A stretch of DNA of 64,000 nt, taken from the NCBI GenBank assembly GCA_002269645.1, contig NIVC01000368.1, positions 62,001 through 126,000 of the forward strand. Direction: 5' to 3'. The position numbers and the translations under genes were made by a program. Origin of the DNA: Macrostomum lignano. Lineage: Eukaryota. Shown piece after piece: positions 4,601-63,813 of the stretch; position 1 is the stretch's first letter, and every line of letters starts with the position of its first letter. The notes beneath the pieces are model-generated. The model did no database searches, was not told where the DNA came from, and saw nothing but the letters and a program-made list of their open reading frames with translations.

Positions 4601-5225
4601 CCACCAGAGCCCTGTTTGGCAGCAGGCCAGTCTTGTCGATAAAATCTGAGCTGGGCTCGAATAGACCCTGCTCGACAGACGATGGCACTTTGACTGGGAT
4701 GATGACGCGGCTGCGGGCTGGAATGGACACGGTGCTGGCAACTCTGGCAATCACGGCGGTGGGCACCACTCGGCAGGCCTGCGAGGAGCTCCTGTCCGGC
4801 AAGATCGAGATCCTGGTTGACCCCAGCTGGACAGAAGACGCCGGGAGATTGACGCTAAAACTTGAGCACATTTTCCCGATGGCGTCCATACCGAGCACGC
4901 ATTCCGGCTGAATCCCGGCAACCACCATTACCTGGTGCTCCACGGATGGCAGTCCCTCTAGCTGTATCGCTATCGTTGCACTCGCCGGAGACTCCAAGCG
5001 TCGACCATCGATTCCGACCGGAGTGCTGATAGGAGGATGAAGCTGAGCATCGACTCCTAGAACTCGAAGCAGCGCAGCTGAAACTAAAGTTACCTGTGCG
5101 CCAGTGTCGAACAGCCACCTGCAGGGCCGGCCAGCAATGCTGCCGGGCAGAAATATTGAGACGGTTTGGGCCTTGCTAGGCAGGGCTGGTGATGGCCCGC
5201 GCTCACCAGTCCTCAGAAGTTTCCC
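1602..5225 (-). CDS. pol: Gypsy Pol: protease, reverse transcriptase, RNase H, integrase (reached by -1 frameshift from gag)
   Basis: LFDTGA protease; STLDLRQGF and YMDD RT; CDSS...TDHKPL RNase H; HHCC (HDDPASGH...CEVC); D-D-E (QVD, HSDQG, VERFN); WLGPY GPY/F module. Uninterrupted ORF 1602..5360. Confidence 0.97.
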   Translation of the reverse strand, partial: GKLLRTGERGPSPALPSKAQTVSIFLPGSIAGRPCRWLFDTGAQVTLVSAALLRVLGVDAQLHPPISTPVGIDGRRLESPASATIAIQLEGLPSVEHQVMVVAGIQPECVLGMDAIGKMCSSFSVNLPASSVQLGSTRISILPDRSSSQACRVVPTAVIARVASTVSIPARSRVIIPVKVPSSVEQGLFEPSSDFIDKTGLLPNRALVVSSVDGNLPVGVCNVSADPVVLYQNQAIGNFDAAEVNGADGEPGEEEAGFNINPELSESQRERIESLLCQAEQAFARHEFDLGTTHLLQHEINLEPGSRPIKHRQRTVPLNYRQQVDEKISEMRRHGIIEPSCSPWASNLLVVRKKNNEIRICTDWRALNSCTVKDAYPLPPLSAALDALTGSSWFSTLDLRQGFLQVELREQDREKTAFYTTQGLMQYRKLGFGLCNAPATFQRLMDLTMAGLNWTEVLTYMDDLILFSQTFEKHAETLEQVLGRLQSAGLKLNKRKSYFCFQEVEYLGHKISAEGIRPTQDKVSAIQSIPIPECAEDVRRLVGMLGFYRRFVPHFASIANPLHQATQKSRQFQWTTQCDDALRKLKSALSTPPVLKLPDFSKGFRLCCDSSGVAIAGVLSQLHEDAECPVAYASRVLNKAERNYSTTHRELLAVVWAMKHFRNYLASAGEILVFTDHKPLQGLLNTKEPEGRLARWITFLQEINFKLLFRPGRENVVADALSRAAATRLHPAWSDNDIRVAQADDPVLAAARQVLLGQRPRRGKAADDAEHLVRTEKLDLGEDGVLKKSGQPVIPRQLRQDLLQLLHDDPASGHLGTERTLARVVSRAWWPGLKDDVQHWVSSCEVCQRRKVPHQHQRAPLQNNTVPSAPWEMVQVDIKGPLPETEAGLRYIICFTDVFSKWVEATAVSNIEARTVADALLRSVVLRHGAPEVIHSDQGRQFESDIFQELCRLLDIRKTRTTPFHPSGNPAVERFNRTLGDMLAAYCMEQQNKWADFLPYVIWAYNSSAHCTTKRSPYAVLHGCDPRIPAELSLPAGGERRLVTDTLADARTGLQLVRQRLQSTQRSRKQQYDKRQHFTPIQVGQLVMLSNPAVLKGQSKALRRRWLGPYRVLERLGPVTYRISKPAGRRRSTVVHHDRLKLFVRRRPQPASWQSAPTPPAAEAGRPPSPAVDPRLTWTDLLDEPTAVGPRRSARTRRPPDFYAAQN
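5166..5225 (-). promoter_or_regulatory. -1 programmed ribosomal frameshift signal (G GGA AAC plus stem/pseudoknot)
   Basis: X XXY YYZ heptamer GGGAAAC at 5225-5219 in the gag frame, 3 nt before the gag stop. The -1 frame is the pol ORF. Followed after 9 nt by a CTGGTGA/TCACCAG stem. Confidence 0.8.
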
Positions 5226-6055
5226 GAAGCCGGGGTCGGGCAGACCTCGGCCCGGTGTCCTCTGCCTGAGCAGCGGCTGCACATAGACGGCACAGCTGGA
5301 GCGACTTGCTTGCCTGGACACTGAGCAGCGAAATGACCGGGCTGAGCACAGTTGAAGCATTTTTCACGGGTGCTGCCTCTTCCACGAGCTGCATTCCTTC
5401 TCCCACCGCGCTGTCCTCCGCGGCTGCCAATGGTGGCGACTGTCGCAGCCAGATCCGCCAACTGCTCTTGCATTTGCTCCAGCCGGTCAGTCACTTGGCT
5501 GCTCACCGATGTCACTGCGACGCTTACCGGGGCTCCTTTGCTGCCGATGCTCTCCAGCGCTGTGGCGCGGTCTGCCAGCTGTTCAGGACTGCTGCTGTCA
5601 TAATCCGAAGCTTTCAACAGAGCCTCACGGATCTCTGTCGGCAGCAGAGCTAGCAGTCGGTGTCGCACTTCGCAATCTCTCACCGTTTGAGCGTGCTCCG
5701 GGCGTGCCTTTCGATACAGAAGCTTGAGTGCGTAGCACAGCTCCCTCAGCGACTCTCCTTGGCGTCGCTTCCGGCTCTCGAACTCAGACATAGCGCGAAA
5801 AGTGTTATCCTTGCCTCTGTAGAACTTGACGAGTTCGTCCTTTAAGGTCTTGTAGCTGCTCTGTTTGGCCGCTGGCAGGTCCCAGACGAACACGAGGGCT
5901 TCACCTGATAGAAGCAGCTTGATCTTGGATGCCATCTTGGTGTCGTTCCACTCAGAATCTGCTGCAAAGTCCTCAAACATCTGCAGCCACATGTTGATAT
6001 CGGTATCGTCTGAGCCAGAAAACTTTGGCGGTAAAAGTGCATTTGCGTGCGCCAT
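5213..6055 (-). CDS. gag: Gypsy Gag with two CCHC zinc knuckles (280 aa from ATG 6055)
   Basis: PPKFSG...W capsid N-terminal motif; CFNCAQPGHFAAQC and CSRCSGRGHRAEVC knuckles. The ORF-track start at 6073 is a TTG; the first ATG is at 6055. Confidence 0.93.
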   Translation of the reverse strand: MAHANALLPPKFSGSDDTDINMWLQMFEDFAADSEWNDTKMASKIKLLLSGEALVFVWDLPAAKQSSYKTLKDELVKFYRGKDNTFRAMSEFESRKRRQGESLRELCYALKLLYRKARPEHAQTVRDCEVRHRLLALLPTEIREALLKASDYDSSSPEQLADRATALESIGSKGAPVSVAVTSVSSQVTDRLEQMQEQLADLAATVATIGSRGGQRGGRRNAARGRGSTREKCFNCAQPGHFAAQCPGKQVAPAVPSMCSRCSGRGHRAEVCPTPASGNF

Positions 6056-7092: not shown

Positions 7093-7206
7093 AAGACAGA
7101 CAACAGACAGATAGACAGACAGACAGACACACAGACAGACAGACAGACAGACAGACACACAGACAGACAGACAGACAGACACACAGACAGACAGGCAGAC
7201 ACACAC

Positions 7207-7241
<35 letters not shown>

Positions 7242-7312
7242 CACACACAGACAGACAGACAGACAGACAGGCAGACAGACAGACAGACAGACAGACGGAG
7301 ACAGACAGACAG
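7093..7312. repeat. (GACA)n/(CA)n microsatellite
   Basis: Seen directly; source of the CLSV ORFs. Confidence 0.95.
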
Positions 7313-8029
7313 GCCAAACATCATTGGTACGCTATATAGTAAAATATACTAGTTGCTTTAGTTAGATTCAAACAGAGTAATAAAAGTTGACACGGACAGG
7401 ACAAAAATGGCATCGGAAATTGCCGCAGTGGATGCATGAAAACCAGATTAAAGCCGATTGATAGCGACTATTACGTTGGCGGCCTGTATTGGAGGCCTGG
7501 GTTAAATATTTTTAGCTAATCGCGTGTTAGCTATCTGTAGATAGGCTGTAAAGTGTGAAATCGAGAAATGAAATGCCAGTCTATATTAAGTAGGCATCGT
7601 TTTCTGCGCAAAATTTTAAGGACCTTATTTTAGCGATCTTGTGTTCGGAACTACAAACCTTTTTTGTTAGATCTTTCTAGTAGAATTGTAATTATTGTTT
7701 TAAATTGTAATACAACCTGCGACCTATTTCTATCTGTAGATAGTCATTTCCCTTTTTTAAAAAGTTGAATACTGACTACAAAGTTGCAAAACGAGTATTT
7801 CTGATTAAAGAAAAGAAGTTCAAAAGATCAACAAATTCATTTCAAGGGTTCAAAGAGTTTCACTGCGCATTTAGTATCAGAAAATTGGTTGCATTGGTTG
7901 CCCCCGTTTTGCGTCTTCTGCTCTCTACAGTTTGCTTTAACTATTTCTCTTTTCGCTCTCTTCTCCCCTGTTCTCTCGACCCTTATTTTAGGCTCTACTC
8001 CTGTTTTCTGCTCTTAATTACTCCCCTTT

Positions 8030-14631: not shown

Positions 14632-16585
14632 CTTGTGTTGGAACAGGTGGGTTTCTGTGTTGGATTTGGAACAGGTGGGATTCTGTGTTAGATTTGGAAC
14701 AGGTGGGTTTCTTGTGTTGGATTTGGAACAGGTGGGTTTCTGTGTTGGATTTGGAACAGGTGGGTTTCTTGTGTTGGATTTGGAACAGGTGGGTTTCTGT
14801 GTTGGATTTGGAACAGGTGGGTTTCTTGTGTTGGATTTGGAACAGGTGGGTTTCTGTGGTGGATTTGGAACAGGTGGGTTTCTGTGTTGGATTTGGAACA
14901 GGTGGGTTTCTTGTGTTGGATTTGGAACAGGTGGGTTTCTGTGGTGGATTTGGAACAGGTGGGTTTCTTGTGTTGGATTTGGAACAGGTGGGTTTCTGTG
15001 TTGGATTTAGAACCGGTAGGTTTCTGTGTTGGATTTGGAACAGGTGGGTTTCTTGTGCTAGATTTGGAACCGGTGGGATTCTTGTGCTAGATTTGGAACC
15101 GGTGGGATTCTTGTGCTAGATTTGGAACCGGTGGGATTCTTGTGCTAGATTTGGAACCGGTGGGATTCTTGTGCTAGATTTGGAACCGGTGGGATTCTTG
15201 TGCTAGATTTGGAACAGGTGGGATTCTTGTGCTAGATTTGGAACAGGTGGGATTCTTGTGCTAGATTTGGAACAGGTGGGATTCTTGTGCTAGATTTGGA
15301 ACAGGTGGGTTTGTTGTGTTGGAACAGGTGGGATTCTTGTGCTAGATTTGGAATAGGTGGGATTCTTGTGCTAGATTTGGAACAGGTGGGATTCTTGTGC
15401 TAGATTTGGAACAGGTGGGATTCTTGTGCTAGATTTGGAACAGGTGGGATTCTTGTGCTAGATTTGGAACCGGTGGGATTCTTGTGCTAGATTTGGAACA
15501 GGTGGGATTCTTGTGCTAGATTTGGAACAGGTGGGATTCTTGTGCTAGATTTGGAACAGGTGGGTTTCTTGTGCTAGATTTGGAACCGGTGGGATTCTTG
15601 TGCTAGATTTGGAACAGGTGGGATTCTTGTGCTAGATTTGGAACAGGTGGGATTCTTGTGCTAGATTTGGAACAGGTGGGATTCTTGTGCTAGATTTGGA
15701 ACAGGTGGGATTCTTGTGCTAGATTTGGAACCGGTGGGATTCTTGTGCTAGATTTGGAACAGGTGGGATTCTTGTGCTAGATTTGGAACCGGTGGGATTC
15801 TTGTGCTAGATTTGGAACAGGTGGGATTCTTGTGCTAGATTTGGAACAGGTGGGATTCTTGTGCTAGATTTGGAACAGGTGGGATTCTTGTGCTAGATTT
15901 GGAACAGGTGGGATTCTTGTGTTGGAACAGGTGGGATTCTTGTGCTAGATTTGGAATAGGTGGGATTCTTGTGCTAGATTTGGAACAGGTGGGATTCTTG
16001 TGCTAGATTTGGAACAGGTGGGATTCTTGTGCTAGATTTGGAACAGGTGGGATTCTTGTGTTGGAATAGGTGGGATTCTTGTGCTAGATTTGGAACCGGT
16101 GGGATTCTTGTGCTAGATTTGGAATAGGTGGGATTCTTGTGCTAGATTTGGAACCGGTGGGATTCTTGTGCTAGATTTGGAACCGGTGGGATTCTTGTGC
16201 TAGATTTGGAATAGGTGGGATTCTTGTGCTAGATTTGGAACAGGTGGGATTCTTGTGCTAGATTTGGAACAGGTGGGTTTCTGTGGTGGATTTGGAACAG
16301 GTGGGATTCTTGTGTTGGAACAGGTGGGATTCTTGTGTTGGAACAGGTGGGTTTCTGTGTTGGATTTAGAACAGCTGGGTTTCTGTGTTGGATTTAGAAC
16401 AGGTGGGTTTCTGTGTTGGATTTAGAACAGCTGGGTTTCTGTGTTGGATTTAGAACAGGTGGGTTTCTGTGTTGGAACAGCTGGGTTTCTCTGTGTTGGA
16501 ACAGGTGGTTTCTTGTGTTGGAACAGGTGGGATTCTTGTATTGAAAAAGCAAACAGGTGGGTTCTCTGTGTTGGAACAGGTGGGT
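14632..16585. repeat. 28-29-bp minisatellite (TTGGAACAGGTGGGATTCTTGTGCTAGAT)n, about 2 kb, upstream of the nuclear receptor
   Basis: About 65 tandem copies; the variant core is more homogeneous than the flanks. Confidence 0.95.
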
Positions 16586-28390: not shown

Positions 28391-32646
<4,256 letters not shown>

Positions 32647-38202: not shown

Positions 38203-41200
38203 CTAAGACTTAAACACAGCAGAGGCGGACATGAGGATATTCTTCAGCTGGTTATTCCTCTCGGCCATCTCCAGCTTCTCCCGCTCGGTCTGGTCCAGCA
38301 GGGCCTGCAGTCGCTCAGCATTCCGCTGAGCAGACTTCACCTCTTTCACCAGTCTGGCCTCATTTGCCGCTTTCTCGCGTTCAAGCACGCGCAGCGCCTC
38401 TTGCGCTTTTTCGGCGTCAGCCGTAGCGCCGCGTAGTTTGGCGCATTCCGCCTCCAGAGCGGCCGAGCGCTGAGCTTGGCGCCTAGCAACCGCTTGACAA
38501 CGGGACAGTGCGTCGGATTGAGCGGCGGCGTAGGCAATTAAAGATTCTTCGCTGAGTTGACAGGCTTGCAGCTTGGATTCGTACAGTGTGAGCAGGTCTG
38601 AGACTCGCGTGTCCTTCAGCTGTGCAAAAGTTTTTGTTAGAGGGAGGGGGTGGTTATGAATGCAAATGAAATGCTGGCGTCCTTAAAGTACCATTGATGA
38701 TTTTAAGAGTCTTCGGCGACAATGTCCCACAACTAGCTGGTACAGATGAAAGCAGTCAGGATGCTTACTGAGGACTCAGGGTGGTCACTGAAGAGACTCA
38801 GGGGAGTCACTCAAGAGACTCAGGGTGGTCACTGAAGAGACTCAGGGGAGTCACTCAAGAGACTCAGGGTGGTCACTGAAGAGACTCAGAGTGGTCATTC
38901 AGAGACTCAGGGTGGTCACTGAAGAGACTCAGGGTGGTCACTCAGAGACTCAGGGTGGTCACTCAGAGACTCAGGGTGGTCACTGAAGAGACTCAGGGTG
39001 GTCACTCAGAGACTCGGAGTGGTCACTGAAGAGACTCAGGGTGGTCATTCAGAGACTCAGGGTGGTCACTCAGAGACTCAGGGTGGTCACTCAGAGACTC
39101 AGGGCGGTCACTCAGAGACTCAGGGTGGTCACTCAGAGACTCAGGGTGGTCACTGAAGAGACTCAGAGTGGTCACTCAAGAGACTCAGAGTGGTCACTGA
39201 AGAGACTCAGAGTGGTCACTCAGAGACTCAGAGTGGTCACTCAGGGACTCAGGGTGGTCACTCAGAGACTCGGAGTGGTCACTGAAGAGACTCAGGGTGG
39301 TCATTCAGAGACTCAGGGTGGTCATTCAGAGACTCAGAGTGGTCACTCAGAGACTCAGGGTAGTCACTCAGAGACTCAGGGTGGTCACTCAGAGACTCAG
39401 AGTGGTCACTGAAGAGACTCAGGGTGGTCATTCAGAGACTCAGGGTGGTCATTCAGAGACTCAGAGTGGTCATTCAGAGACTCAGGGTGGTCACTCAGAG
39501 ACTCAGGGTGGTCACTCAAGAGACTCAGGGTGGTCACTCAAGACTCAGAGTGGTCACTGAAGACTCAGAGTGGTCACTGAAGACTCAGGGTGGTCACTGA
39601 AGACTCAGGGTGGTCACTGAAGAGACTCAGGGTGGTCACTCAAGAGACTCAAAATGGTCACTGAAGACTCAGGGTGGTCACTGAAGAGACTCAGGGTGGT
39701 CACTCAAGAGACTCAGGGTGGTCACTCAGAGACTCAAAATGGTCACTGAAGACTCAGGGTGGTCACTCAGAGACTCAGGGTGGTCACTCAAGAGACTCAG
39801 GGTGGTCACTGAAGAGACTCAGGGTGGTCACTCAAGAGACTCAGGGTGGTCACTGAAGACTCAGAGTGGTCACTGAAGACTCAGGGTGGTCACTCAAGAG
39901 ACTTAGGGTGGTCACTCAGAGACTCAGGGTGGTCACTCAAGAGACTCAGGGTGGTCACTCAGAGACTCAGGGTGGTCACTGAAGACTCAGGGTGGTCACT
40001 CAGGGACTCAGGGTGGTCACTGAAGACTCAGGGTGGTCACTCAGAGACTCAGGGTGGTCACTCAGAGACTCAGGGTGGTCACTCAAGAGACTCAGGGTGG
40101 TCACTCAGAGACTCAGAGTGGTCACTCAGAGACTCAGGGTGGTCACTCAGAGACTTAGGGTGGTCACTCAGAGACTTAGGGTGGTCACTTAGAGACTTAG
40201 GGTGGTCACTCAGAGACTCAGGGTGGTCACTCAGAGACTCAGGGTGGTCACTCAGAGACTCAGGGTGGTCACTCAAGAGACTCAGGGTGGTCACTCAGAG
40301 ACTCAGGGTGGTCACTCATAGACTCAGGGTCGTCTCTCAGAGACTTAGGGTGGTCACTCAGAGACTTAGGGTGGTCACTTAGAGACTTAGGGTGGTCACT
40401 CAGAGACTTAGGGTGGTCACTCAGAGACTTAGGGTGGTCACTTAGAGACTCAGGGTGGTCACTCAGACTTAGGGTGGTCACTCAGAGACTTAGGGTGGTC
40501 ACTCAGAGACTCAGGGTGGTCACTCAGAGACTCAGGGTGGTCACTTAGATACTCAGGGTGGTCACTCAGAGACTCAGGGTGGTCACTTAGAGACTCAGGG
40601 TGGTCACTCAGAGACTTAGGGTGGTCACTCAGAGACTTAGGGTGGTCACTCAGAGACTTAGGGTGGTCACTCAGAGACTTAGGGTGGTCACTCAGAGACT
40701 TAGGGTGGTCACTCAGAGACTTAGGGTGGTCACTCTTGGACGACTATTTTACGGTCTGCTATTCACGTGATGCGCTCGTGGTCAACAGTCGCCTCTCCGT
40801 CGCATCAGTCTAACGAGTCGTTAAAAAGATAAAAGAGTCGCCCAGGGTCACTACTTGAGGCAATTCGTCCCATTTCACTGACCCCTGAGCACATACCTGA
40901 GTTGCAATGAAAAAGAAACAGATTAGATAAAGCACTCACATTCAGCCTGTTTTTAACATCGTTAATCAGCTGATCCAGCTGACCGCTGCCCAGCTCGTGT
41001 CCACCGTTGACTGCACCGCCGCCGCCACCGCTGCTGCCGGCAGATGCAGACGTTGAAGTTGTCGAACCAACCGCGACACCGTGGCCGTTTATCAGTTCAA
41101 CGCCGAGACCGATGCTACCCGCATAGCAACCGTTGCTAGGCAACGCTGAAGGGCCGCTAGCGATACTATTATTGGCTGAGGCTAAAGCCAAGCGATGACG

Positions 41201-48423: not shown

Positions 48424-49949
48424 CTGGAAGTTAATTTAACTATAGCTTTAAAATCCAACCACTTTGTTCAATGCAATCATTACTCCTAGATATGTACTCT
48501 GATCAAAGCTAATGTATCAGAACCAGAGTCCAAAGAAATACTATGAAAATAATTTTTTTAAATATTGATACATACATTTTTTGCTTAATTTTCACCAAAA
48601 TGTAATGGTTAACACTTTCAGATTTTCAAGAGCCTAGAGAATTATATATACTGAAATTTTAAACAATTTTCTATCAAATAAACTACCAAGATAGCTTATG
48701 TAGATAGCAATAGTATTACATTAAATATAAACTTAATATTTGAGAAAAACTGAAATGAATGAATTGTAATAGAAAGTTTTATATTCTTTTAATGTTTTAC
48801 TGAAATCCAATAAAATTTTTTACTTAGTAACATCTATTAGAATTTAAAAAATAGGCTTTGTTTTATGATATCTTTGAAACTAGCCTAAAAAGTTAAATTT
48901 AAAGTTAGGCCTGGACAAGATTACAATATCAAAGTATTAAATTAATAGGTTTATTATTAATTAAATTGGTAAATAGATCCTAACCCTATTTCTATGATTT
49001 AGAATAAGAAGTTCAAGTCTAAGATCCTAACAAAAAGTAGAAGGCCAGTCTTATCTAATTCTAAAAAAATTGAATTTAAACACTAGAATTTAGATATTAT
49101 TATATATATGCACTAATATATTTTTTTGTAATTTCAATTAAGTTATATAGATTTATAGCTTGTTGACTAATAATATAGAAATAGGAATATTATCTTATTT
49201 TATGCGAGAATTCAATTTTGCCACTTTGGCAACTATTTATTTTGATTCAGCCAAATTGGTTTATAAACAATGGCAGCACCTCACAGGTGCCACAGCAAAG
49301 GGCTTAGCACTTCTAATTAGGTCCCTAAGGGGGAGGGGGTGGTTAAATGGTCAATCCTTTCTCCTAGCATTGTTAAAAATTAAAATAGGCCTTAGCCTTA
49401 GCATAGCACATTATACTCAAATTTCATAAAAATCATTGCATATAACAATCTTAATTCTTGTATTGTATTAAAACATTATGGTAGATCACCCTATCAAAGA
49501 ATAGGAAGATATTCCCTTAGCCTATTCATTACCAAAAAGAGATGGGGATAAGAGCCTAGGATGGTAATCATCTAGATCTAGGTCTTAGACTTTTAGCCCT
49601 TGTCATTTTGTCAATTGGCATTTTATAAACAGGCTATTTTGTCAACTCTCTTCTTACATTGTTGTTGTTTTAACTAGGCCTAGCCAATAAATAAAGCAGT
49701 CTCAAACATTGGTCACTTTGTCAACTGGCTAATGAGGACATACATGCGCAACAGTCGGCCGAGTCGGCCGATCCGGCCGACCGATTTGGCGGCCAACCAA
49801 GTAAGTCGCAAAATTGATTAACCGCCAAAAAAAACGAAAAAACAAAAGACGAAAAAGGGGAAAGGAAAAGGAAAAAACGAAAAAAAAGGGAGCAAAGAGA
49901 AAGAGAAAAACACAAAAAGAGTTGTAAGTGCTGTAAGTTGCAGCACTGA

Positions 49950-50860
49950 AGACAAGGTAAGTCGCACCGAGGGCGAGCTAAGTCGCACCGAGGGCAAGCT
50001 AAGTCGCAGCAGGACCGAGCTAAGTCGCATCGAGGGCGAGCTAAGTCGCACCGAGGGCAAAATAAGTCGCACCGAGCGAGAGCTAAGTCGCACTAAGTCG
50101 CAGCAGGACCGAGCTAAGTCGCACCGAGGGCGAGCTAAGTCGCAGCAGGACCGAGCTAAGTCGCACCGAGGGCGAACTAAGTCGCACCGAGCGAGAGCTA
50201 AGTCGCACTAAGTCGCAGCAGGACCAAGCTAAGTCGCACCGAGGGCGAGCTAAGTTGCAGCAGGACCGAGCTAAGTCGCACCGAGGGCGAACTAAGTCGC
50301 ACCGAGCGAGAGCTAAGTCGCACTGAGGGCGAGCTATGTCGCAGCAGGACCGAGCTAAGTCGCACTAAGGGCGAGCTAAGTCGCACCGAGGGCAAAATAA
50401 GTCGCACCGAGCGAGAGCTAAGTCGCAGTAAGTCGCAGCAGGACCGAGCTAAGTCGCACCGAGGGCGAGCTAAGTCGCAGCAGGACCGAGCTAAGTCGCA
50501 CCGAGGGCGAACTAAGTCGCACCGAGCGAGAGCTAAGTCGCACTAAGTCGCAGCAGGACCGAGCTAAGTCGCACCGAGGGCGAGCTAAGTCGCACCGAGC
50601 GAGAGCTAAGTCGCACCGAGGGCGAGCTAAGTCGCAGCAGGACCGAGCTAAGTCGCATCGAGGGCGAACTAAGTCGCACCGAGCGAGAGCTAAGTCGCAC
50701 TAAGTTGCAGCAGGACCGAGCTAAGTCGCACCGAGGGCGAGCTAAGTCGCACCGAGCAAGAGCTAAGTCGCACTGAGGGCGAGCTAAGTCGCAGCAGGAC
50801 CGAGTAAGTCGCAGCAGGGCCGAGGTAAGTCGCAGCAGGACTGAGTTAAGTCGCAGAGCA
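49950..50860. repeat. Subterminal tandem array of TAAGTCGCA motifs (putative transposase-binding sites)
   Basis: Dozens of CTAAGTCGCA(CCGAG/GCAGGACCGAG) units. The same motif recurs near the other TIR (about 56020-56060). Confidence 0.85.
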
Positions 50861-51205
50861 TCTTTAGGATTATTAGGATAGGATTAGTTTAGGATGAATT
50901 TAATGTATCACTTACTAGGGTGTAGGCTACGTGTGCATTAACGCATCAATTTGAAAAATTAAGAATTACGAAGCCAGAAATGGCTAAGGAATAGAAATAG
51001 GGATAGAATAACTTATAAGCAGTAATTTTTCAGCCCTATTACAATTGCAAATCATACTTTTAATAATATTTAATTAGCAAATTAAAACTGCAAGATTCTA
51101 ACGGTCTTATATATGAACTTAGAAGAACTGTAGTCTTAATGATTATGCATGTACCATTGTAATAATTGATTAAAATTGTAGCAAATTAAAACTGATAAAA
51201 AACTT

Positions 51206-54200
51206 TCAAAATAGTCCACTTAGCAAATCAGAATCAGAATCTTTAATTTCCTCGTCTACGTTGGATTCTTTTTGCCGTTGACCTCCAGGAGCATCAGAAC
51301 GCCAGTGTTTTTTCAGCCAATCATTGACATAAATATCTGGCTTAAATTTCATCAGCGGAGGCCCATTTATTCGAATCCGTAGTAGATGCTCCAATGTTTT
51401 TGGTGCCAAGCGTGTTCTCCTGTCATAGGCAATGTGCTTATAGATAGAAAACCCTCTTTCAGCCTCAGCTGATGATATTGGCAAAGTTAACACAACCATA
51501 ATTAGATTCTTTATTCTGGGCAGCCATTCAACAGTTCTTGTCTCTAGAAAGTGATAGAAAGTGACTCCAAAATTTCACCGGACCTTTGCCTTTGTAGGCA
51601 CAGAAGTCAACACTATGCGAAGTGATCAAACTTTTTAGGAGTAGACCGAACTGACCAGAGATTGTCCTTTCTGTAGCGCGTTCTGAAGCATCTGCATCTC
51701 TAGAGTCTGAATCAGAAAGATGGTCCTCTGTTTCAGATTCAGAGCTGTCATCTTCCATTCCAAACCGTCTAGCAAGAGGTATGATTCTCGAACTGTATGT
51801 AAAGACAGTATGTAATGTTTCAGCATTAGGCAATAACACTGGGTTGAGCACATTAAATATTGAGTAGTCATCCTCAGGAAAATAATTACGCAGCTGATCA
51901 ATTATGCTATCAATGATTCGACTGCGAATCTCATCCAGTGCTGGATAAGCTCCCATGTCAACAACACTGCCACGTCCACTAGCATCAAATAATCTATTTC
52001 TTAGAGATCTGTCTGCAGCAGAACCTGGTTGCTTCAACTCAAACCTCTCTGTTGGATCGCTGCTTCCAGGGCCAGAAGGACAAGCAAAGTTAGAATAAGA
52101 TAGGTCTCTTGTGTGACATCCTGAATGGTATTCCAGCTGCGGATATCCATCTGCAGTTCCCAAAACTCGACGACACTTGCAGGAAGCCAAAAAGTCCACA
52201 ATGCGAGGACCATTGTTCGTTTTTAAGGTTTCTAGTGAATGGATAAGGTTAGTGTGGCGTTCTTGCAAGCCAATAAATGTACCCTTGGCTCTTTGAAACT
52301 GCAAGGACTCAAATTCCAGTAATTTTAGAATGTCCATGAGAAATAGATGTAATGAATAATACCGGACATTTTGCAATGTTTTCAATAATCCAGAGGCAGT
52401 TGCTTTACTTTCGTCATCAAAGCCTGAGGAAGGTGATTTGATATTTTCTAAATTTGTCAGAAGCAAGTAGTACGACTTTCGAATCACATCAAGAGCAGAC
52501 ACTTCCGATGCAACCCACCTGATGCGATATATTCTTTTTAATTCATAGAAAACCAAGTTGAGTGCTTCCGAAGTTTGTGCCAAAGATGCCTTACCTTTAA
52601 CAGTGTGGCTCATATAAAATTTGTGTAGAGAATTTATATTCTTATCGAGATGTTGCATAAATGGGAAGATTTCAAAGGCATGATAGATTGAAAGTTCTAA
52701 CTTATGCGCTGCACAATGGTGCTGAAAAAATTGTTTGCTAGCCCAAGGCCTCAGTTGACTTATTAATCCCACTCGACTTCCTGTCATTACGGATGCACCA
52801 TCAGTTGTCACCCCCCATAGCCTTCGTTTGATTTCATCTTCTAGCTTGTCATCCGAAAATAAACGGATGAGAAGTTCATAAATGCTTCGTCCAGTCTCTA
52901 CTTCAGTCAGACGTTTAAACCGATAAAAAAACATCAAAGGTTGGCTGTTTTCAAGAACTCTGAAGTATGTCATGACGTAGCTGTTTGAATGAATATCAGA
53001 CGTTGTATCTAGTACAATAGAAATCGGAAGATTGTCAGCACTTTTAATGTAATTCACAAATGTCCGATGCATTGTATTACTGATTGATTCCACCATTGCT
53101 GCGGCACTTTTGCGATGCTTATGATGGCTCCCCATATCCAACCCATTTTTTACTTGTAAATCAATCATATTTGGATGAGCACTGAATGGAATATTAGATT
53201 TGACTTCGGCATAAACTGTTGTCAAAACTCGGGCTGTTATTTCATCTCGTTTAGTTTTAGCTAGTCTAGCGGCCTCATTCATCTGTTTGAGTTGCTTTGC
53301 AAGAACTGAAGTATGTTTTTCCTTCATCCACTTTATGGCGTCACTGTAAAGTGTATTTGATGAATGTTCCTATAGTTTTCTTCGTACGCTATCTTTTGCA
53401 TGACCTTTGGGAATGTAGCCTTGTTCTGTTGCAAAAGTTAACTTACGTTGGCTCTCTAGATTTGTCTCCTTTTTCTTATGTGCATTCAAAAATTTTCTGC
53501 AGATCCGACATTGTATTCCAGATCTTGATAGATCTTCGGTGTTTTGAACATATTGAAACCATGTCTTCATTTCTTGTGACACAAATTTTCTTGAAAATGA
53601 TCTGCAATGGTCAAATTAGAGAATATTTTGGGATTTGGACTATTTGTGAGTATCTAAAAGCAATATGCTAATAAGTGCAATACACAGTACACTATACATT
53701 AATTTACAGTTCGTCAGTTTCCATTTACTTACTGTGACTGGTGCATCTCCAAAGAATGTAACCACTCCTCTCAAAAACCAGATGTATCCTCCCAGTCCTT
53801 TTTAGGGAAAACTTCAATATTTTCGCCCATCATAGAGGAAGACGAGGGCTTTGATGCTGAAGTGGCTAGACATGCGTCTGCAGATGTGCTTATGCATGGT
53901 ATTTTTCTTTGCGATGGCCCTGCTTCTGCAGTATTTACTTGTACTATTTCAACATCACCTGAACCCCTTGAGTCGCTCGAATCTAAATCAACAATAGGAC
54001 TTTGGCAAAGTGATCGTTTCGTTGATTGTCTTTGAATATTTACTTGCCTAATAATTTCCACTTGTAGTTTGCTTGTTTGCTGGTCATTCTCCAACAACTC
54101 TCTTCTTTCCTGTACATTTGCAGCAGAGCAAAAATTAGAAGTTTCTGCAGCAGCAGTTTGAACAGCATGATCTCGATTAGCTGCTATTTGCTCTGAAAAT

Positions 54201-55360
54201 TCATAGGACCTGGCCAATTCACTACGGTGTGAGCTTTCAGAACATGGAGCTGGAGCAAGAGCTAGTCGCATTTCGATTCTTTCTGTTGCTGATGAAGCAG
54301 ATGCTAATGCTGAGTCTGCCAATGTACCTGCTTCTCTTGAAGGTGTATTTATGATGGCTTCAATATTGTCCTCTAAAATCCAATGAGCACCTGAGCAGTC
54401 ATTTTCTCTACCTGGAGTCAACTGTCCAAGTTTCCACCTTGTAAAAAGCAAAGGCTTTCGTAACTCACTGCCGGATTCAGGGCACCGGTTTATTGAATAG
54501 TCCTCATGACCAAGTTCATCCCATTCTCTTGCTGGCTTTAAGATGTAGTTGGGCTTGTCTCTTAGCCTACGATAAATGGACTCAAAAAATGTGCACCTGT
54601 TATTTTGCGTACTTCGTGCATAGATGATCATGTAATGCACATTGTTCCTAATAATTTCAGCTAATGAGTTATCAATGATAATTTTATCTTCATAAACAGG
54701 TCTTCTTTGTGTTGCATGCATTTTAGCTAGTTGCAGTTTTCCAATGCTACTGGCAGTTGTGGAACTTGAACTGTCCGATTCTGATCTAGAAAAGTCTCGT
54801 TGATACAAGAGAATAATGGCCATAGCACTTTTACCATTCCCATTCTTTAATGCATTTGGTTCTGTTGGAATTGTCTTACTAGCAGACTTGAAAAAATCAA
54901 TGATGGATGACTGCGATGATCCACTAGGAGCGGAACTTGGCAGCCCATGTCTAGTTTTTCCCTGATACCCAATAGATGTATCGGTAAAAAACATATCTGC
55001 TGCTTCCTGCTTCTCTTTTGATGCAATAACAAAGAAACTGCTGTCCGTTTTGAAGCCCGAGGACCGATAGAAGTCAGCAGAAAATGAAACCACAGGTCGT
55101 CTAAAATTGCCGCTATATTCTTGAACTCCAATCAGAAGAAAATCACGGAGTCTCACTGGCACTGATCCTAATAGCATTGCAGTTGTGGAACAAACTTTCT
55201 TCAGCTCAATGAACTCTGAAAATTCTTGAGATCCAATATTAGGCTCATCAGTATTTAACTCATTTATAACAATTGAGCACTCACTCTCAGCTAGAATACC
55301 ATTGATAGCTAGGATGCCACTTAGAATCAGTAGGCAAAGACAACTAAGGCTGTACATCAT
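51206..55360 (-). pseudogene. Signal peptide + LTD-like domain + TTF-type Zn finger + hAT DDE transposase fusion (about 1337 aa reconstructed), disrupted in this copy
   Basis: Exons 55360-53733 and 53601-51206 joined by a 131-nt GT-AG phase-2 intron. Transposase motifs SIVLDTTSD, GVTTDGASVMTG, HCAAH, IRWV, LPISSAEAERGFS. Lesions: TGA at 53773-53771, TAG at 53372-53370, 10-bp duplication at 51545-51564. Confidence 0.82.
53771..55360 (-). CDS. Intact 529-aa ORF: predicted secreted lamin-tail-domain-like protein (N-terminal part of the transposon gene)
   Basis: MMYSLSCLCLLILSGILAINGILA signal-peptide-like segment; IVINELN...EFIEL and YSINRCP...TPGRENDC motifs; paired cysteines. Acceptor CAG 1 nt before the ATG, with a 5'UTR intron at 55362-55455. 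Confidence 0.7.
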   Translation of the reverse strand: MMYSLSCLCLLILSGILAINGILAESECSIVINELNTDEPNIGSQEFSEFIELKKVCSTTAMLLGSVPVRLRDFLLIGVQEYSGNFRRPVVSFSADFYRSSGFKTDSSFFVIASKEKQEAADMFFTDTSIGYQGKTRHGLPSSAPSGSSQSSIIDFFKSASKTIPTEPNALKNGNGKSAMAIILLYQRDFSRSESDSSSSTTASSIGKLQLAKMHATQRRPVYEDKIIIDNSLAEIIRNNVHYMIIYARSTQNNRCTFFESIYRRLRDKPNYILKPAREWDELGHEDYSINRCPESGSELRKPLLFTRWKLGQLTPGRENDCSGAHWILEDNIEAIINTPSREAGTLADSALASASSATERIEMRLALAPAPCSESSHRSELARSYEFSEQIAANRDHAVQTAAAETSNFCSAANVQERRELLENDQQTSKLQVEIIRQVNIQRQSTKRSLCQSPIVDLDSSDSRGSGDVEIVQVNTAEAGPSQRKIPCISTSADACLATSASKPSSSSMMGENIEVFPKKDWEDTSGF

Positions 55361-57713
55361 TCTGTGAAAGATTAAGTCGAGTATATGATTTTGGTGATAA
55401 AATAAAATTGATTTATGAGTATTACTATATAAATAAAACATTTAAAAGCCCTTACCTTTACCAATTCATGTACAGAAAGTAAGTGTAAATACAACCAATT
55501 GCCTTGGTAGTTTAGTTATATGCTCGTATCAGATGCAGGCAGACAGCATAGGCTGCCAAGGTGCTATAAGTTAAGGTTAACTTTCACTATTTGGCTTTAC
55601 AGACTGCTTTTATCGCTGCATGCATTGGCTTAGCCTTAGCTTGTGCCATCATACTCATACAGCTATATATACATATGTATCTCTGCCACTCCCCACTTTT
55701 GCAACCTTACACTGTACAATCATGCCTAAAACACTCCGTGTCAAGTGTACTGTTCTAGTGCCACATGGGGTACAAATACGATTAGGAATGACAAGAGTCA
55801 AAACCATACATGCACAATAGTTGGCCGATATGGACGACTGATTTGGCGGCCAACCAAGGTAAGTTGCAAAAATGCCCACCCAAATAAATACCAAAGTAGT
55901 ATTAAGTAGCTGACGAAGCATTTTGCCTTAATAAAGACAGTCATATTTACTCCTGCCGTTTACCCAAAGTTGCGTTAATTTTGCTTTCAGGTTTTTTTCA
56001 TGTAAGTCGCATTTTTGGCCGAAAACTACGTCGCATTTTTGTTAAAACTAAGTCGCACGGCCGACCAAATTTTGGAGGTTGCGCATGTATGAATGAGGAG
56101 TAGGCTTACTCCAACCAACATTGGTCACTTCATCAACTGCCAATTTATTACCCATTGTGACTGCAAAAAAACTAAAAGGTAACTGGTCGTTTGGCCCATC
56201 AACATTTTGGCCATGGACATTTCACCCCCAGACCATTTCACCTATTAACTATTTTGGCCATGGACCATTTTGCCTACAATTTGCCTCCAACTGACCAACC
56301 ATTTACTTTTATACTTTATCACAATTTTACACTTTGTGCTTTGATTTTCAATTTTGGTGACAAATCTTATTTGTTTAGTATTTTTGGCTTTATCTTGCTT
56401 GTAACTGTGAAAGTGAAACCCTTTCTCACCCCTGGAGTTTGATTATACAAATTGGCTTTAATTGGATTGCACTTTTGAAAGGAATAACTTTAAAAAAACT
56501 TATAATAGGCCTAATTTACAATTGTAATAAACAAAATCGCAATAACGTAATAACACAATTGTTGTAGCAACAATTTATAGCATTTTTATTACACATTAAA
56601 ATTAAAAATTAGCATTGAAAACAAAGAAAATAAAGATACATGTATGGTTGTATCTCTAGTTAATACATAGGCCTAGGCCTAATCATTATTTTGGCCAAAG
56701 CAGTAAGCACCCATTGATTGCCAAACTGGTTTATGAGCAAAACAGACTATGGGAAAAATGGTCCGGGGGCAAAATGTCAATGGCCTGTGGCTGAAATAGT
56801 TTAGGCTAAATTAGGGGCGAAACAACCAGAATTCAACTAAAACTAGGCCTAAATCCTAAAGGCTGAAATGAAATGACTATTGACTAGGTATACTAATTAT
56901 TATAAATACCCTTCTGCACAACATCTGCCAGCAGCCAGCTTTGATTGATGTGTCTCTGACTAGCCTATATTAACAAACTATAGACCTAATGTCAATGACA
57001 AATGCACTCATGTGTTTGAAATGAATGCAGCAGGATAGGGATATCCCGTGTTACACATTTCTTGTCAAATTTTTGGATGTATAAATTCATTTATAATTAG
57101 GCCTAAGGAGTAGGCCTAGTTGATGAGCACTGGACCAAAGATATGATGCTTGAAATGGCACTAGTGGTAGTGCCCCTACGGCCTACTAGGCTATTAAAAT
57201 TTAAAAGGAGCTATTACATTACACTTACAGTATTAATAGGGCATATTAGGAAAACTAATCGTAAAAAACATAAGAAAACAACGGTTCAAACCAAAAAATG
57301 TTGACTGCCGACTCAAGTCTCACTCTTAGTAAGTAGCATGACAGTTAGGTCCGAGTTAGCAAAAATGGCACAACAGCACAGCACAATCCGCGGCCGCTGG
57401 TAAAAAAATAATAGAAAACGTCGTAGAAACTAGTCCTGATTTACCGTAAAAAAACTACCCTGTAAAACAAATATTTTTGTTTTATTTACTTTAAGTGTAT
57501 TTAAAACTATATTTTGTATACAAAAATAAAAAACACAAATTAATTTACACTTTAGTTATTTCTATACTGATTTTGTACTGTCGTAAAAGCGTTGTGCAAA
57601 TTTCAAATTTTACTTTTTCTAAGAAGCAAGTTTTCGTTTTCGGCTTAGGATTCGTGCTTATTCCACCGATGTCTTGAATTTTAAATTTAATACCAAAATA
57701 TACTTGATGTACT

Positions 57714-59930: not shown

Positions 59931-62900
59931 TTAGTCATCATCATCATCATAATCGTCATCGTCATCAGAGAGAACATTCAATTCGCCAGCCAGGTAGTCC
60001 TTGTTGAGGTCATAGGTGTACTCCCCTTCAAAATCATCGAACACAACCTTGAACTCCTGGCTGAGAATGTCCCTGCTCTGGCAGGTTGATGGCAGTCGCT
60101 GGAGGACGTGGCCTGGTATCCAGTCCTCCCCATCTGTGAAGCAGAACTTCATCTCGATTCTTCTGCTCACCAGATCGGGGAGGTTGGCCAGCGTCCGCTG
60201 ATTGGTGGTCTCGTCAATGGCGTCGCCCTCATCCTCGTGTCTTCTTCCTCGTCCTCGTCCTCGTCCTCCTCCTTGACCTCGTCCTCCTCCTTGACCTCGA
60301 CCTCGTCCTTGACCTCGACCTCGTCCTTGACCTCGACCTCGTCCGCGTCCGCGACCGCCGCCTCGTCCACCAAGGCCAGGCCCAGCTTGAGCAGCCACAG
60401 CTCCTGCATCTTGAATCCGTTGACGACGCTGCAGCCTGTCAGCAATGGCAGTGCGGACTCGCTCCTTGCGCTCGCGAGCATCCAGGAGGCCGGACGGAGG
60501 CACGGTGGGCGCATCGGCACCCTTTTGCTGGTCCTGTAGTTCCACTATCTGCAGAACTTCACGCAGTTGGCTTCGCAGTTGAGGCACACTGCGCTTGACA
60601 CCAGCCGCGGAGAAGTTGAGCAGGCTGGCCTTGTCCTTGGGCAGGTGGATCTCTACAAAATATTACATGAAACATAATTTTCATGCTAAGCAGTGAGCAA
60701 ACAGACACATTTTTCTGCCCACACGTACTGGTCGCTTTGTGCAGTTGCAGCTGTGCTTTGATGGCCTTCTCGTGCTGGTCAGGGGCTAGTTGGTGCAGCA
60801 CAGCGTCCATCCTGGAGATGGTTGGCCAGAGTCCGCCGTAGGCCTCGATGACACGGAGAATGGATCGGATGCTCTCGGCGTTCGAGTCCTTCTTGCGCTG
60901 CTTTTCAGCTAGCTTGGCGCGGAGAATCTCCTGGCGGCAGCTGCGCAAGGCGTCGGCGCTCTCCTTCCCTCGCTTTTCGAGCTGAGGGACCAGCTTCCGT
61001 GCCCTGGTAAGAAGGAGGTCCTTCTCGCGCTCCGTCTTGTCGGCCAGCCACTCGGACGTGCAGTTATAGCCGAAGAGCACAAGCGACTCGCGCGCAAGAG
61101 GGCGCATGTTGGGCCTGTCTGCGACGCACTTATCCAGCATCCCGAAGCCTCGCTCGACTGCTACGTTGTCCTTAGGCGCAGATGAGACAAGCTGGGCAAC
61201 TTCTGGCGTGAGCTGCCGCAGAGTGCCCCCAGGCAGGTGGTCACGCACCTCTCTCTCTAGCAACACAAGCATGTGTGTCGCCATGATCTGAAGTGGTGTT
61301 TTAAAGTATAAAAGCTACAATCTATACATTCGTTAATGTTCATTGATACTGTACTGTACTTTGTGACTAATCAGCGCATTCATAATTCAAAACCCATATT
61401 TACCTGCAGAGCCTGGCCGACAATCTCGTTCTCCAAGGCTGTCAGCTCAGACGTCAGCGCCGCCCAGATGTCCTGCAGCTGGATGTCCCGGAGAACCGTC
61501 TGGGCCAGTTCGGGAAATGGGCCAATCATGCTGCTGGCCACAGTAACGCCCTCGGACGATGACAGCTGGCGCAGCCAATTGCAAGCGCGCTCATAGCGTT
61601 CGTTCATGTCCGTGAGGGTCACGTCTCGGCAGCGCAGGAGCACCCACAGTGGCCGGATTAGCAGAACGTCAGCAATTCCGAGTGCACGGCAGCCACTCAG
61701 CAGCAAATCAGATGCCAAGTCAGCCTGCACTGCGATCAGCAGGCGGTTGCTGCAGGTGTACTCAGCCAGGAACTCGGACAGGCGGTCTCGCTGCCAGAAA
61801 ATGTTTCCCCCGTTGGGAAATGTGATGTAGGCGCGGTTGCCACGGAAGTCGTCCAAACGAAGGGACGGTGCGCCCTTCGACTCCAGATACGTTTGAAGCG
61901 GAATCGCAACGCCACACTGTTCACTGCCCAGGGCATGGAACGCCTTGCAGACGGTGCGGATTAGACGCTGCGTGCCAGATTCAGCTTGGGACGGGCGGAA
62001 GCCAGGGAGGGCAGCAGATCCGACGGCCTCTGCAGCCATGCAAGTCTCCCACTCGCGCAGCGCAGCTTCTGCGGCAGCAGCAAGATTTACAATCACATGC
62101 ATGCCGCAGAACAGTGCAGTCACAGGTGGAGGTGGGTTCACGCCTTGCTGGGTTGCCAGCTCCTGCCGCATCTCGTTGAGCAGTACGTTGAGGCACTTGT
62201 TGACCACGTGTCGGTCAGTCATTAGGAAGTTGACGCGTGCCAGTAGATTACACTTCAGGCGGCGTCTCTCTTCGTCGCTCGAGTGGGCAAGAACTACCGA
62301 GCAAAACAGATCGACCAGCTCTTCCACCGAGTAGTCCAGTTCGCGGGCGTAGATGTTCGCGGTGCCACCCTCGACCTCGCGAAGAGAAACAGCCATCGGG
62401 CGGCTGTCCCCAGTGTCAACCTATGAATGGTGCATATGTAATACAAAGCATATTGTGAATATAAAAGTTCATTCTTATTAACTAAAAGTTCTCTTTTTGT
62501 GAATATTAATAATAATAATTAATTATTAAATTCATTTCCTTCCTTTAAGTCCAATTATTTGTCAATATGCACGAAAATGCATTACTCAAGTTTACCTGGT
62601 AGGCGGCATAGTGTCGGCCCTTCTTGCTGGTAGCATCATGCAAGATCGTTATTGGTCGGTCCTCCTTTGCCCCCTGATGCAGCAGCTTCTCCATCGCGCT
62701 CGCCTTAGCTAGGCAGCTGCCAAGGCTGTAGCTCAAAGCACTGACCTGCGAACGCGACGGAAGCGCCAAGTTGCCGGCGTCGATGCCAACGAGGTCCGTG
62801 AGGACGCGTCGAATCGCTGGCTTGACGTGCTGCACAGGGACGTGGCAGTCCAGCACCAAGTGCATACAGGTGCTGATGACCTGGTTCGTGTACTGCTGTC

Positions 62901-63813
62901 CTCCACTCGGACGTGATGTCTTGGTGATGATGGAGCCCACACTCTGCTGTTGAAGCTTCTCGTTTGCTTCACAGATGAGGCCGTGCAAACTGCGGGTATC
63001 GGCTCTGAGCTCCTTCACTCTCTCAGTGGCGAGCTGACTTGACTTGCTACGGCTGTTGGCACGCCTCAAGCGCAGGTCACGCCTACGGCTGGCAGATGAT
63101 GCAAAGGCCTGCCGCTTGGCATGCTCAGCACGCAGCTTGTCGTATCTGCCTTGTAGCCGTCTGAGACGCTGATTCCAGACGCGAATTTCAGGCCGCTTGG
63201 CTAGCTTAGCCCTCAGTCGCCGGACTTCAGCTTTCTGCTCGGCCAGGGCGGCCTTCAGCTGCGCAACTTTGGCTTTGGCCTTGTGAACTCGCAGATCAAC
63301 AATGGCTGCCTCGATGCCGATCTTCTCTTCGACAGAGACACTCATGCCAGACTGCTTCGATTGGTCAAGCCTTGCTGGAGTCGGTGAGTTCGAGGCCATT
63401 GGCATTGGTGATGTTGACAAAGGCACAATCGGCATTGCCATTGGGTTCAACAGCTGTTGCAATGCCGCTGGAGGTTCGAATTCTCGTGCCAAATGGGCCT
63501 CATATGTCGAGATGCCATCACCAGACGCAGCCTCACGAGTGTGACTCTTCAGCAGAATTTGGGCTTCTCTCTCTAAATCCTTAATCCTTTTCAGGAGTGC
63601 CTTCTTCAGATTGTCAGAGACAAACTCCATCAAGTGAGAAGGTAGCCCAACCAGTTTCAGAATCGGCTGGGCCTTGTCAAGTCCTGTATGGGCCTGGCTG
63701 CTGGACTTGAGATGAGTAATCACCTGGCCATTGGTGACTGGGCGAATGGATGATCTGGACCTGCCACGAAGCCGAAGGTTGGGCTTGGTCTTGGGTGTGG
63801 AGGATGTGGCCAT
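59931..63813 (-). CDS. Intact hAT-like DDE transposase (about 1171 aa, 4 exons) with C-terminal RG repeat and Spindlin-like Tudor domain
   Basis: Exons 63813-62596, 62420-61404, 61287-60729, 60652-59931, GT-AG, phases 0/0/1, 3516 nt with no stop. Catalytic pattern LHDATSK (D), LMTDRH (D), CGMH (CxxH), NVAVERGFG (E). Element ends not identified; the 5' end probably lies beyond 64000. Confidence 0.82.

Follow-up and report, generated by a model that had tools for sequence, protein, structure and literature searches.

A hAT transposase gene that begins with a predicted secreted-type LTD module in Macrostomum lignano and distant relatives

Introduction

Eukaryotic cut-and-paste transposases are viewed as nuclear enzymes that consist of a DNA-binding domain and a catalytic core. 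A locus of Macrostomum lignano raises the question whether such an enzyme can also begin like a secreted protein. In a 64,000-nucleotide stretch of contig NIVC01000368.1 (assembly GCA_002269645.1, positions 62,001 to 126,000 of the forward strand), which we call the window and to which positions refer unless another sequence is named, a hAT transposon of 6,353 bp lies on the minus strand at 49739-56091. Upstream of its transposase exon it contains an open reading frame (ORF) with a hydrophobic start, followed by motifs that resemble those of the lamin tail domain (LTD). An earlier interpretation made from the DNA letters alone (the sequence-only reading) had proposed that both parts once formed a single protein of about 1337 amino acids (aa), a secreted-type domain plus a transposase. 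We compared the locus with other genomic copies and with public proteins. The element is a copy, recently decayed, of an autonomous M. lignano hAT DNA transposon, and its fused design defines a deep hAT clade, named LTD-hAT here, in which the gene is normally one uninterrupted ORF.

Gene structure and evidence for splicing

The coding part of exon 1 (53733-55360, minus strand) comprises the leader, the LTD-type domain, a linker and a WEDT..W motif, and contains one TGA. It is seen in the window as a 529-aa ORF that runs on the minus strand from the ATG at 55360 to this TGA (53773-53771), starts with MMYSLSCLCLLILSGILAINGILAESECSIVINELN, and includes the motifs IVINELN..EFIEL and SINRCP..TPG..NDC. 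After the TGA, 13 further open codons (EEWLHSLEMHQS) lead to the sequence CA/GTAAGT, in which the donor G is located at 53732. The intron (53602-53732, minus strand; 131 nt, GTAAGT...TTGCAG) is in phase 2. At its acceptor, TTGCAG/A at 53602/53601, the join CA+A yields a Q, after which the frame reads SFSRKFVSQEMKTWFQYV..CRIC. Exon 2 (51206-53601, minus strand) encodes a BED-like zinc finger, a predicted hAT catalytic core and the hAT dimerisation domain, carries one TAG and one 10-bp duplication, and ends at the stop at 51206. On re-reading, all coordinates of the sequence-only reading (the ORF, the open frame past the TGA, donor 53732, acceptor 53602, phase 2, and the terminal inverted repeats with their target-site duplication) proved exact.

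A stop-free copy of the kind that the sequence-only reading had proposed to look for exists in public data. The M. lignano protein PAA51197.1 (P0042), which is encoded by the sister copy L007, is intact, has a length of 1,313 aa and contains one intron of 104 nt. Its exon junction, HQSA/YFSRKF, is the junction predicted from the window, and its parts follow in the order hydrophobic leader, N-terminal domain (N-domain), linker, BED-like zinc finger and hAT transposase. The Mlig_3_7 annotation behind this protein was derived from RNA-seq transcript assemblies (PMC5730564), and this transcript-based model is indirect evidence that the splice of exon 1 to exon 2 is in use.

Comparison of the genomic copies points the same way. 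Three lineages whose proteins share only 52-67% identity have kept the donor and its phase 2, and the acceptor is conserved in both lineages that cover this site (donor in L004, L005, L006 and L007; acceptor in L005, L006 and L007); the intron sequence has diverged. In none of the lineages does exon 1 contribute its own stop; it ends, always in phase 2, at a TAA that is made by the GTAAG donor (three lineages). The TGA at 53771-53773, which would have spoken for two separate genes if all copies shared it, is private to the window copy: the equivalent codon is CGA in L005 and L001, CAA in L006/L007 and AAG in L004. Between the acceptor and the first ATG of exon 2, the peptide FSRKFV is unchanged through three synonymous differences, which argues that this stretch is translated from upstream. 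The LTD-like ORF was found directly upstream of the transposase exon inside all four copies that are bounded by repeats and a duplication (the window copy, L005, L006 and L007) and in both subfamilies, and a one-off capture, which the sequence-only reading had considered, is thus not what is observed. That reading had also proposed to compare the ratio of nonsynonymous to synonymous substitution rates (dN/dS) of the two halves. Between lineages, dN/dS is 0.22-0.25 for exon 1 (against three other lineages), 0.14-0.16 for the LTD part and 0.14 for the transposase, values that indicate purifying selection on both halves and their retention as coding sequence while the element spread.

We are highly confident that the two exons of this gene once specified a single polypeptide of about 1,310-1,340 aa. 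PAA51197.1, the conserved splice sites and the single-ORF relatives described below bear out the proposal of one protein of about 1337 aa. An alternative is that a captured secreted-protein gene lies as cargo upstream of an ordinary transposase gene, and that the fusion is an artefact of the gene models. Elements of the hAT type can carry captured host sequence, and most public M. lignano gene models of the family begin at the exon-2 ATG or later. Trans-splicing, which is common in M. lignano (PMC5730564), counts for this alternative as well. It leaves unexplained that exon 1 of three lineages has no end other than the TAA of the GTAAG donor and that coding constraint reaches upstream of the exon-2 ATG, and it fares no better with the relatives outside Macrostomum.

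The fused design outside Macrostomum

A profile of the N-terminal ORF was searched against 1.84 billion representative proteins. It gave 181 matches at E<=1e-3, and 85 of these also passed E<=1e-10; a word-index protein search with the family alignment gave only four proteins, none of them named. About 20 of the 181 relatives have a length of 1,000-1,250 aa, and a hAT dimerisation domain was found at the C-terminus of seven of the eight that were scanned with Pfam. At least three distant relatives have both halves in one ORF, with P0113, P0089 and P0126 encoded by uninterrupted ORFs of 3,402, 3,336 and 3,261 nt, respectively.

A motif search of the family proteins identified the conserved pattern W-E-D-T-x-x-F-x-x-x-W..HQ, which in the window forms the end of exon 1 (53735-53794, minus strand). 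This WEDT..W motif is present in 27 family proteins, 24 of which are outside the Macrostomum-type sequences P0001, P0002 and P0042, and in these 24 the W(L/F)xY..CxxC finger adjoins it in the same ORF. The Macrostomum intron thus splits a coding region that is normally continuous; this short phase-2 intron, directly ahead of the zinc finger, is a gain of the Macrostomum lineage.

Among themselves, the transposase cores of LTD-bearing proteins share about 30% identity, and with those of hATs without the LTD about 22%. In neighbour-joining analysis with p-distances, the bipartition of the LTD-bearing cores received a bootstrap value of 88/100, or 100/100 when two long branches were left out. When relatives were collected with the transposase alone, the N-domain was absent from all of the 21 nearest hAT proteins outside Macrostomum. 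Among named proteins from outside Macrostomum, ZNF862-like and KIAA1586-like ones come nearest (21-27% identity). Hydra hATx-6 is an ordinary hAT of 674 aa. With moderate confidence, we take the comparison to reflect one ancient capture followed by co-evolution of the two parts. Because both halves share one ORF in distant relatives, the WEDT..W motif runs into the finger in 24 proteins, and the LTD-bearing cores form a clade of their own, two separate genes or a passive cargo were rejected; the cargo-and-artefact explanation is scarcely credible, and a simple passive cargo is very unlikely.

Of 20 relatives whose clusters were looked up, none has an informative name, except for an amphioxus LTD-repeat protein. 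A literature search for LTD combined with hAT or transposase, or for a hAT transposase with a signal peptide, found nothing relevant, with Repbase and Dfam outside the comparison. The sequence-only reading had likewise known of no described hAT clade with this design. Given the lack of informative names, both the N-domain family and the LTD-hAT clade appear to be undescribed.

The transposase half

The C-terminal dimerisation region (..LPISSAEAERGFS.., 51209-51553, minus strand) matches PF05699 (Dimer_Tnp_hAT) at 51206-51499 in the window with E=2.6e-07 and 30.8 bits, the cut-off being 21.4 bits (P0042: E=8.2e-08), and it aligns to the C-terminus of the Hermes transposase. The match of the finger to zf-BED is weak (E=0.057, 13.9 bits versus a cut-off of 20.6). 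The finger has the CxxC..H..H pattern, and W(L/F)xY..CRxC is conserved across the family. Precomputed Pfam annotation places PF27073 (FAM200-ZBED5 RNase-like) on P0003, P0004 and P0042; a Pfam scan of the 599-aa ORF of the window gave no family. The core motifs ISIVLDTTSD, VTTDGASVM, HHCAAHKLE and SSAEAERGFS are present, and the alignment to Hermes does not reach significance around the two aspartates. From its family membership, we infer that the transposase part is an ordinary hAT enzyme.

The N-domain as an enlarged LTD-type domain

The sequence-only reading had noted motifs of the lamin tail type in the ORF. The corresponding region, aa 28-334 of the ORF (54359-55279, minus strand), was assigned to a probable LTD-type beta-sandwich with conserved cysteines on the basis of hhalign, an AlphaFold2 model and cysteine conservation. 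The N-domain profile matched the protein XP_035693005 (P0169) of the amphioxus Branchiostoma floridae with E=4.4e-7, a protein that contains eight bona fide Pfam LTD repeats (313 bits in total). When a 39-sequence family alignment was compared by hhalign with seven Pfam-verified LTD repeats of P0169, the probability was 99.7% (E=1.8e-25), and the match covered columns 2-234 of 243 of the family and columns 3-187 of 191 of the repeats. Motifs common to both are INELN..E(F/Y)IEL, NG..A, D..VY (D..VYS with XP_035693005), S..RC and TPG..N(D/N)C. This profile-profile match to genuine LTD repeats upholds the relation to lamin tail domains.

The AlphaFold2 model computed from the 39 sequences is beta-rich with helical insertions and has a predicted local distance difference test score (pLDDT) of 80.7 and a predicted template modelling score of 0.84; with a 3-sequence alignment the pLDDT was 33 and the model unusable. 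A search of the family profile against PDB chain sequences gave no match at E<=10. Conserved cysteines are located at profile positions 1 (67%), 30 (54%), 229 (95%), 266 (100%) and 295 (100%), and those at 266 and 295 align with cysteines of the amphioxus repeats. We thus regard the N-domain as an enlarged LTD-type domain of 215-290 aa.

Outside the transposon family, the N-domain has its closest relative in XP_035693005, which is annotated as "LTD domain-containing protein" and has a hydrophobic leader of its own directly before VIINELN. It differs in consisting of eight tandem units of about 190 aa and in having no transposase, whereas the transposon domain is longer (215-290 aa), contains insertions and has an extra conserved cysteine.

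Leader, linker and the destination of the protein

The hydrophobic N-terminal leader of the window copy, MMYSLSCLCLLILSGILAINGILAESE (55280-55360, minus strand), resembles a signal peptide. To survey this feature in the family, we used the 87 proteins that start with Met and hold the domain start, and scored a leader when a 9-aa window just before the domain had a mean Kyte-Doolittle hydropathy of at least 2.0. With this heuristic, 68 of the 87 members have a hydrophobic leader (median length 24 aa), compared with 6% of random internal windows and 5 of the 21 N-termini of hATs without an LTD, and the signal-peptide-like start first noted in the window is thus found across the family. The leaders have a positively charged start, a cysteine is kept at the first residue of the domain, and the sequence drifts among members; many of the leaders resemble textbook signal peptides, e.g. 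MASRFFVFLFAFVALLLCFYAENC, followed by K, and MKVLKLIFIYLFFDILPNALTC, followed by S. Since the domain start itself has no Met, the leader must be translated. The linker between the LTD and the transposase is of low complexity, spans about 200 aa and includes a basic cluster resembling a nuclear localisation signal. Such a cluster is found upstream of the WEDT motif in 21 of 27 proteins, versus a background of 25% (e.g. SPKKKRVC, SERKRPC).

How could a protein with these parts serve a transposon? The C-terminal two thirds would perform ordinary hAT cut-and-paste transposition on the terminal repeats and the subterminal TAAGTCGCA array of the element. The leader and LTD module would go back to a single capture from a secreted LTD protein of an animal, and would now be a selected, integral and required part of the transposase. 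The leader is most likely a real signal for targeting to the endoplasmic reticulum (ER), so that most molecules would enter the secretory pathway. A minority would be imported into the nucleus by means of the basic cluster of the linker and carry out transposition there; it might consist of protein that escapes translocation or, in Macrostomum, of a leaderless product that starts at the exon-2 ATG (MKTWFQY). Because the GTAAG donor puts a TAA in frame, unspliced mRNA would give the leader-LTD-linker protein alone. Anatomy and mechanism together make up what we consider the best overall explanation, and we think it likely to be correct as a whole; the two fates, with a secretory pool and a small nuclear pool from one gene, are the most economical view of the destination, yet a tentative part of this explanation.

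Several observations weigh against this explanation. The case for the splice is built from comparative sequence and a public transcript-based gene model rather than from RNA reads, and the case for the leader from a hydrophobicity heuristic rather than from a signal-peptide predictor. Pfam identified no family in the N-terminal ORF, its LTD model (PF00932) did not match at E<=1, and among the family members only 2 of 39 had a Pfam LTD match, at E of about 0.03. Of the profile and structure comparisons that the sequence-only reading had proposed, the profile-profile comparison found the LTD (99.7%) and the Foldseek search found nothing significant: with the N-domain model as query, the best PDB matches were Ig-type domains at E>=0.07 with no LTD entry listed, and viral structures gave nothing significant. 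In a Kimura-corrected neighbour-joining tree, in which distances are saturated, monophyly of the clade dropped to 21/100. Around the distant relatives L008, L009 and L010, which are metagenome-assembly contigs from ENA with LTD-hAT genes as single uninterrupted ORFs, the same script that recovered the L007 element detected no terminal repeats accompanied by an 8-bp duplication in the 5 kb to either side. These genes may have imperfect ends, or may be decayed or immobile, possibly through domestication. The internal Met of exon 2 at which the Macrostomum models begin is not conserved in the intronless relatives, and the two fates are thus without general sequence support. Finally, an efficient signal peptide with no transmembrane segment between the LTD and the transposase would carry the complete transposase into the ER lumen and thereby away from DNA. 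A type I membrane topology, in which the LTD is luminal and the transposase nucleoplasmic, was also considered and rejected, as inspection of the P0042 sequence by eye showed no hydrophobic segment in the linker.

As an alternative, the leader would be unused in secretion, the LTD would be a nuclear accessory module that, for example, binds DNA, chromatin or the nuclear lamina or helps to assemble the transposition complex, and the protein as a whole would act in the nucleus as other hAT transposases do. A transposase must reach nuclear DNA, the basic cluster is conserved well above background, the fusion is under purifying selection as a single unit, and the Ig-fold of the lamin tail binds nuclear partners. 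On the other hand, the 68 of 87 leaders that are kept while their sequence drifts behave as signal peptides do, and an N-terminal hydrophobic stretch of this type would be bound by the signal recognition particle. The domain itself looks secretory, since its three nearly invariant cysteines match the leader-bearing amphioxus LTD-repeat protein. We find a purely nuclear role doubtful.

The leader, the cysteines and the basic cluster are all conserved, and no leaderless start is conserved in the intronless relatives. This combination would also fit a transposase that is secreted, folded with disulfides and taken up by other cells (from soma to germline, or between individuals or mating partners), where it would be imported into the nucleus by means of the basic cluster and mobilise resident copies. 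Secreted effectors whose site of action is the nucleus of another cell characteristically pair a signal peptide with a nuclear localisation signal. Such an export is improbable, however: no uptake or membrane-crossing module could be recognised, a protein of 150 kDa would need to cross a membrane, the benefit to the encoding copy would be indirect, and we neither know of a precedent nor found one in the literature.

Whichever destination applies, a deep hAT clade keeps under purifying selection a module that resembles the start of a secreted protein, a leader plus a cysteine-bearing LTD. If, as we favour, the secretory pathway is involved, a DNA transposon would depend on it in its life cycle or its regulation, with a bearing on soma-to-germline and horizontal spread and on the self-limitation of transposase dose. 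Were the protein nuclear throughout, an extracellular-type LTD would have been re-used inside the nucleus, and if it were exported, a cut-and-paste transposase would act in a different cell from the one that produced it. The destination of the protein is testable, because an intact copy (PAA51197.1), terminal repeats and a natural 297-bp substrate in the form of a miniature inverted-repeat transposable element (MITE) are available; M. lignano can be made transgenic (PMC5730564).

Comparison with known systems

With canonical hATs (Hermes, Ac, hobo, Tol2) and with the Buster/Charlie-type proteins ZBED5, FAM200, ZNF862 and KIAA1586, the system shares the 8-bp duplication, short terminal repeats, the dimerisation domain and a MITE derivative, and it has a BED-like finger and a putative RNase-H-like core (precomputed match to PF27073). 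The leader, LTD and linker add 400-550 N-terminal residues to LTD-hAT proteins, which cluster apart from the canonical hATs; no other hAT that we know of or found has this N-terminal module.

Mobile elements that use the secretory pathway to move between cells include env-bearing gypsy-type retroelements and Mavericks with fusogens. In these, the secretory protein is a separate envelope protein or fusogen and not the recombinase. The Drosophila P element obtains two products from one transposase gene, since intron retention gives a truncated product. The DNA-binding domain is retained in that product but would be missing from the protein made by unspliced LTD-hAT mRNA.

The nearest architectural analogue is found among bacterial extracellular nucleases, namely Xds of Vibrio cholerae, which acts on extracellular DNA. 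In Xds, a cleavable leader is followed at once by an LTD and, after long unstructured linkers, by an OB fold and an EEP nuclease (PMC6746945). Its LTD is dispensable for activity and localisation (PMC6746945). The order of modules is the same in both proteins, namely leader, LTD, linkers, nucleic-acid-binding domain and nuclease-type catalytic domain. The catalytic part of LTD-hAT differs in being a hAT transposase within a mobile element, and the sequence relation between the two is limited to the LTD class.

Ends, copies and lesions of the element

The window element is bounded by perfect terminal inverted repeats of 14 bp, with an exact match of CATACATGCGCAAC at the 3' end in gene orientation (49739-49752, plus strand) and its exact counterpart at the 5' end (56078-56091, minus strand). 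On both sides lies the target-site duplication AATGAGGA, which was read directly at 49731-49738 and recurs as the same 8-mer at 56092-56099. The CATACATGCGCAAC repeat also bounds the three other genomic copies used for comparison, each with its own 8-bp duplication (L005 CTTGGGTT, L006 AATTTAAA, L007 TAACATCC) and with the 14-bp repeat perfect in every case. DNA identity of the copies is about 97.7% within and about 72% between two subfamilies. The translation of exon 2 shares 99% of its residues with PAA56523.1 of M. lignano and 70% with PAA88322.1. The window holds a single copy, which is inserted within a short local repeat: the 21-mer CATTGGTCACTTnnTCAACTG flanks the insertion at 49707-49727 and 56119-56139 and is found nowhere else in the window (0 expected).

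There are 46 exact copies of TAAGTCGCA in the window, versus 0.39 expected by chance, and all are inside the element. A motif count places 44 of them in a subterminal array with a 21-bp period near the 3' end of the element (49802-50855, plus strand), and the other two near the 5' end; Tandem Repeats Finder reports rows over the array at 49958-50834. These copies are presumed to be transposase-binding sites.

The 5'-terminal 287 bp of the window element (55805-56091) form a complete repeat-to-repeat MITE-like unit, with about 90% full-length identity to a free-standing MITE of 297 bp at L007 11122-11418. This MITE has its own duplication, TCCAGAAA, and perfect 14-bp repeats. The L005 counterpart of the unit is at 7117-7402, and the inner repeat is missing from subfamily B. 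With a complete MITE-like unit at their 5' end, the elements of subfamily A thus transpose as MITE-plus-gene composites.

The window copy is a dead element that is not autonomous, with two premature stops and a frameshifting duplication. In addition to the TGA of exon 1, exon 2 has a premature TAG at 53370-53372 (minus strand), where intact copies have CAG (Gln; RRKLQEHSS in P0036). Three-frame translation and the DNA revealed a 10-bp tandem duplication of CACTTTCTAT at about 51554-51563 (minus strand), where the intact copies read KFWSHFLETRTVEW (P0003, P0036), and the resulting frameshift falls just ahead of the dimerisation domain. Neither exon-2 lesion was listed in the sequence-only reading. 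The frameshifted tail KFWSHFLSLSRDKNC also occurs in the annotated M. lignano protein PAA91696.1 (P0029), which has Gln at the TAG position; the 10-bp lesion is thus either common to at least two genomic copies or older than the TAG. In L001, exon 1 is intact (576 aa). Its intron contains a microsatellite expansion of the CCACT/CCCACT type at about 2930-3045 that is absent in the window (Logan contigs of runs SRR31628425, SRR31628403 and SRR31628392; 92% identical).

Other features of the window

An Rfam scan of the window found no RNA family. Pfam has no match for three consecutive ORFs of 241, 338 and 422 aa in GC-rich DNA at 60559-63813 (minus strand). At 1602-5360 (minus strand), in a GC-rich (58-59%) segment, an uninterrupted ORF of 1,252 aa encodes protease, reverse transcriptase, RNase H and integrase, a pol of the kind found in Ty3/gypsy-type long terminal repeat retrotransposons. 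A 317-aa ORF at 31693-32646 (minus strand) matches UTP--glucose-1-phosphate uridylyltransferase (UDPGP, E=4.6e-107) and probably belongs to a host gene as one large exon. From about 600 to 48200, more than 25 different minisatellite arrays with units of 16-40 bp fill much of the window, for example at 14638-16468 (29 bp x 65), 38773-40735 (21 bp x 93) and 28636-29984 (23 bp x 59). Several (AGAC)n and (TGTC)n tracts are present as well, and together these repeats explain the strong local strand skews.

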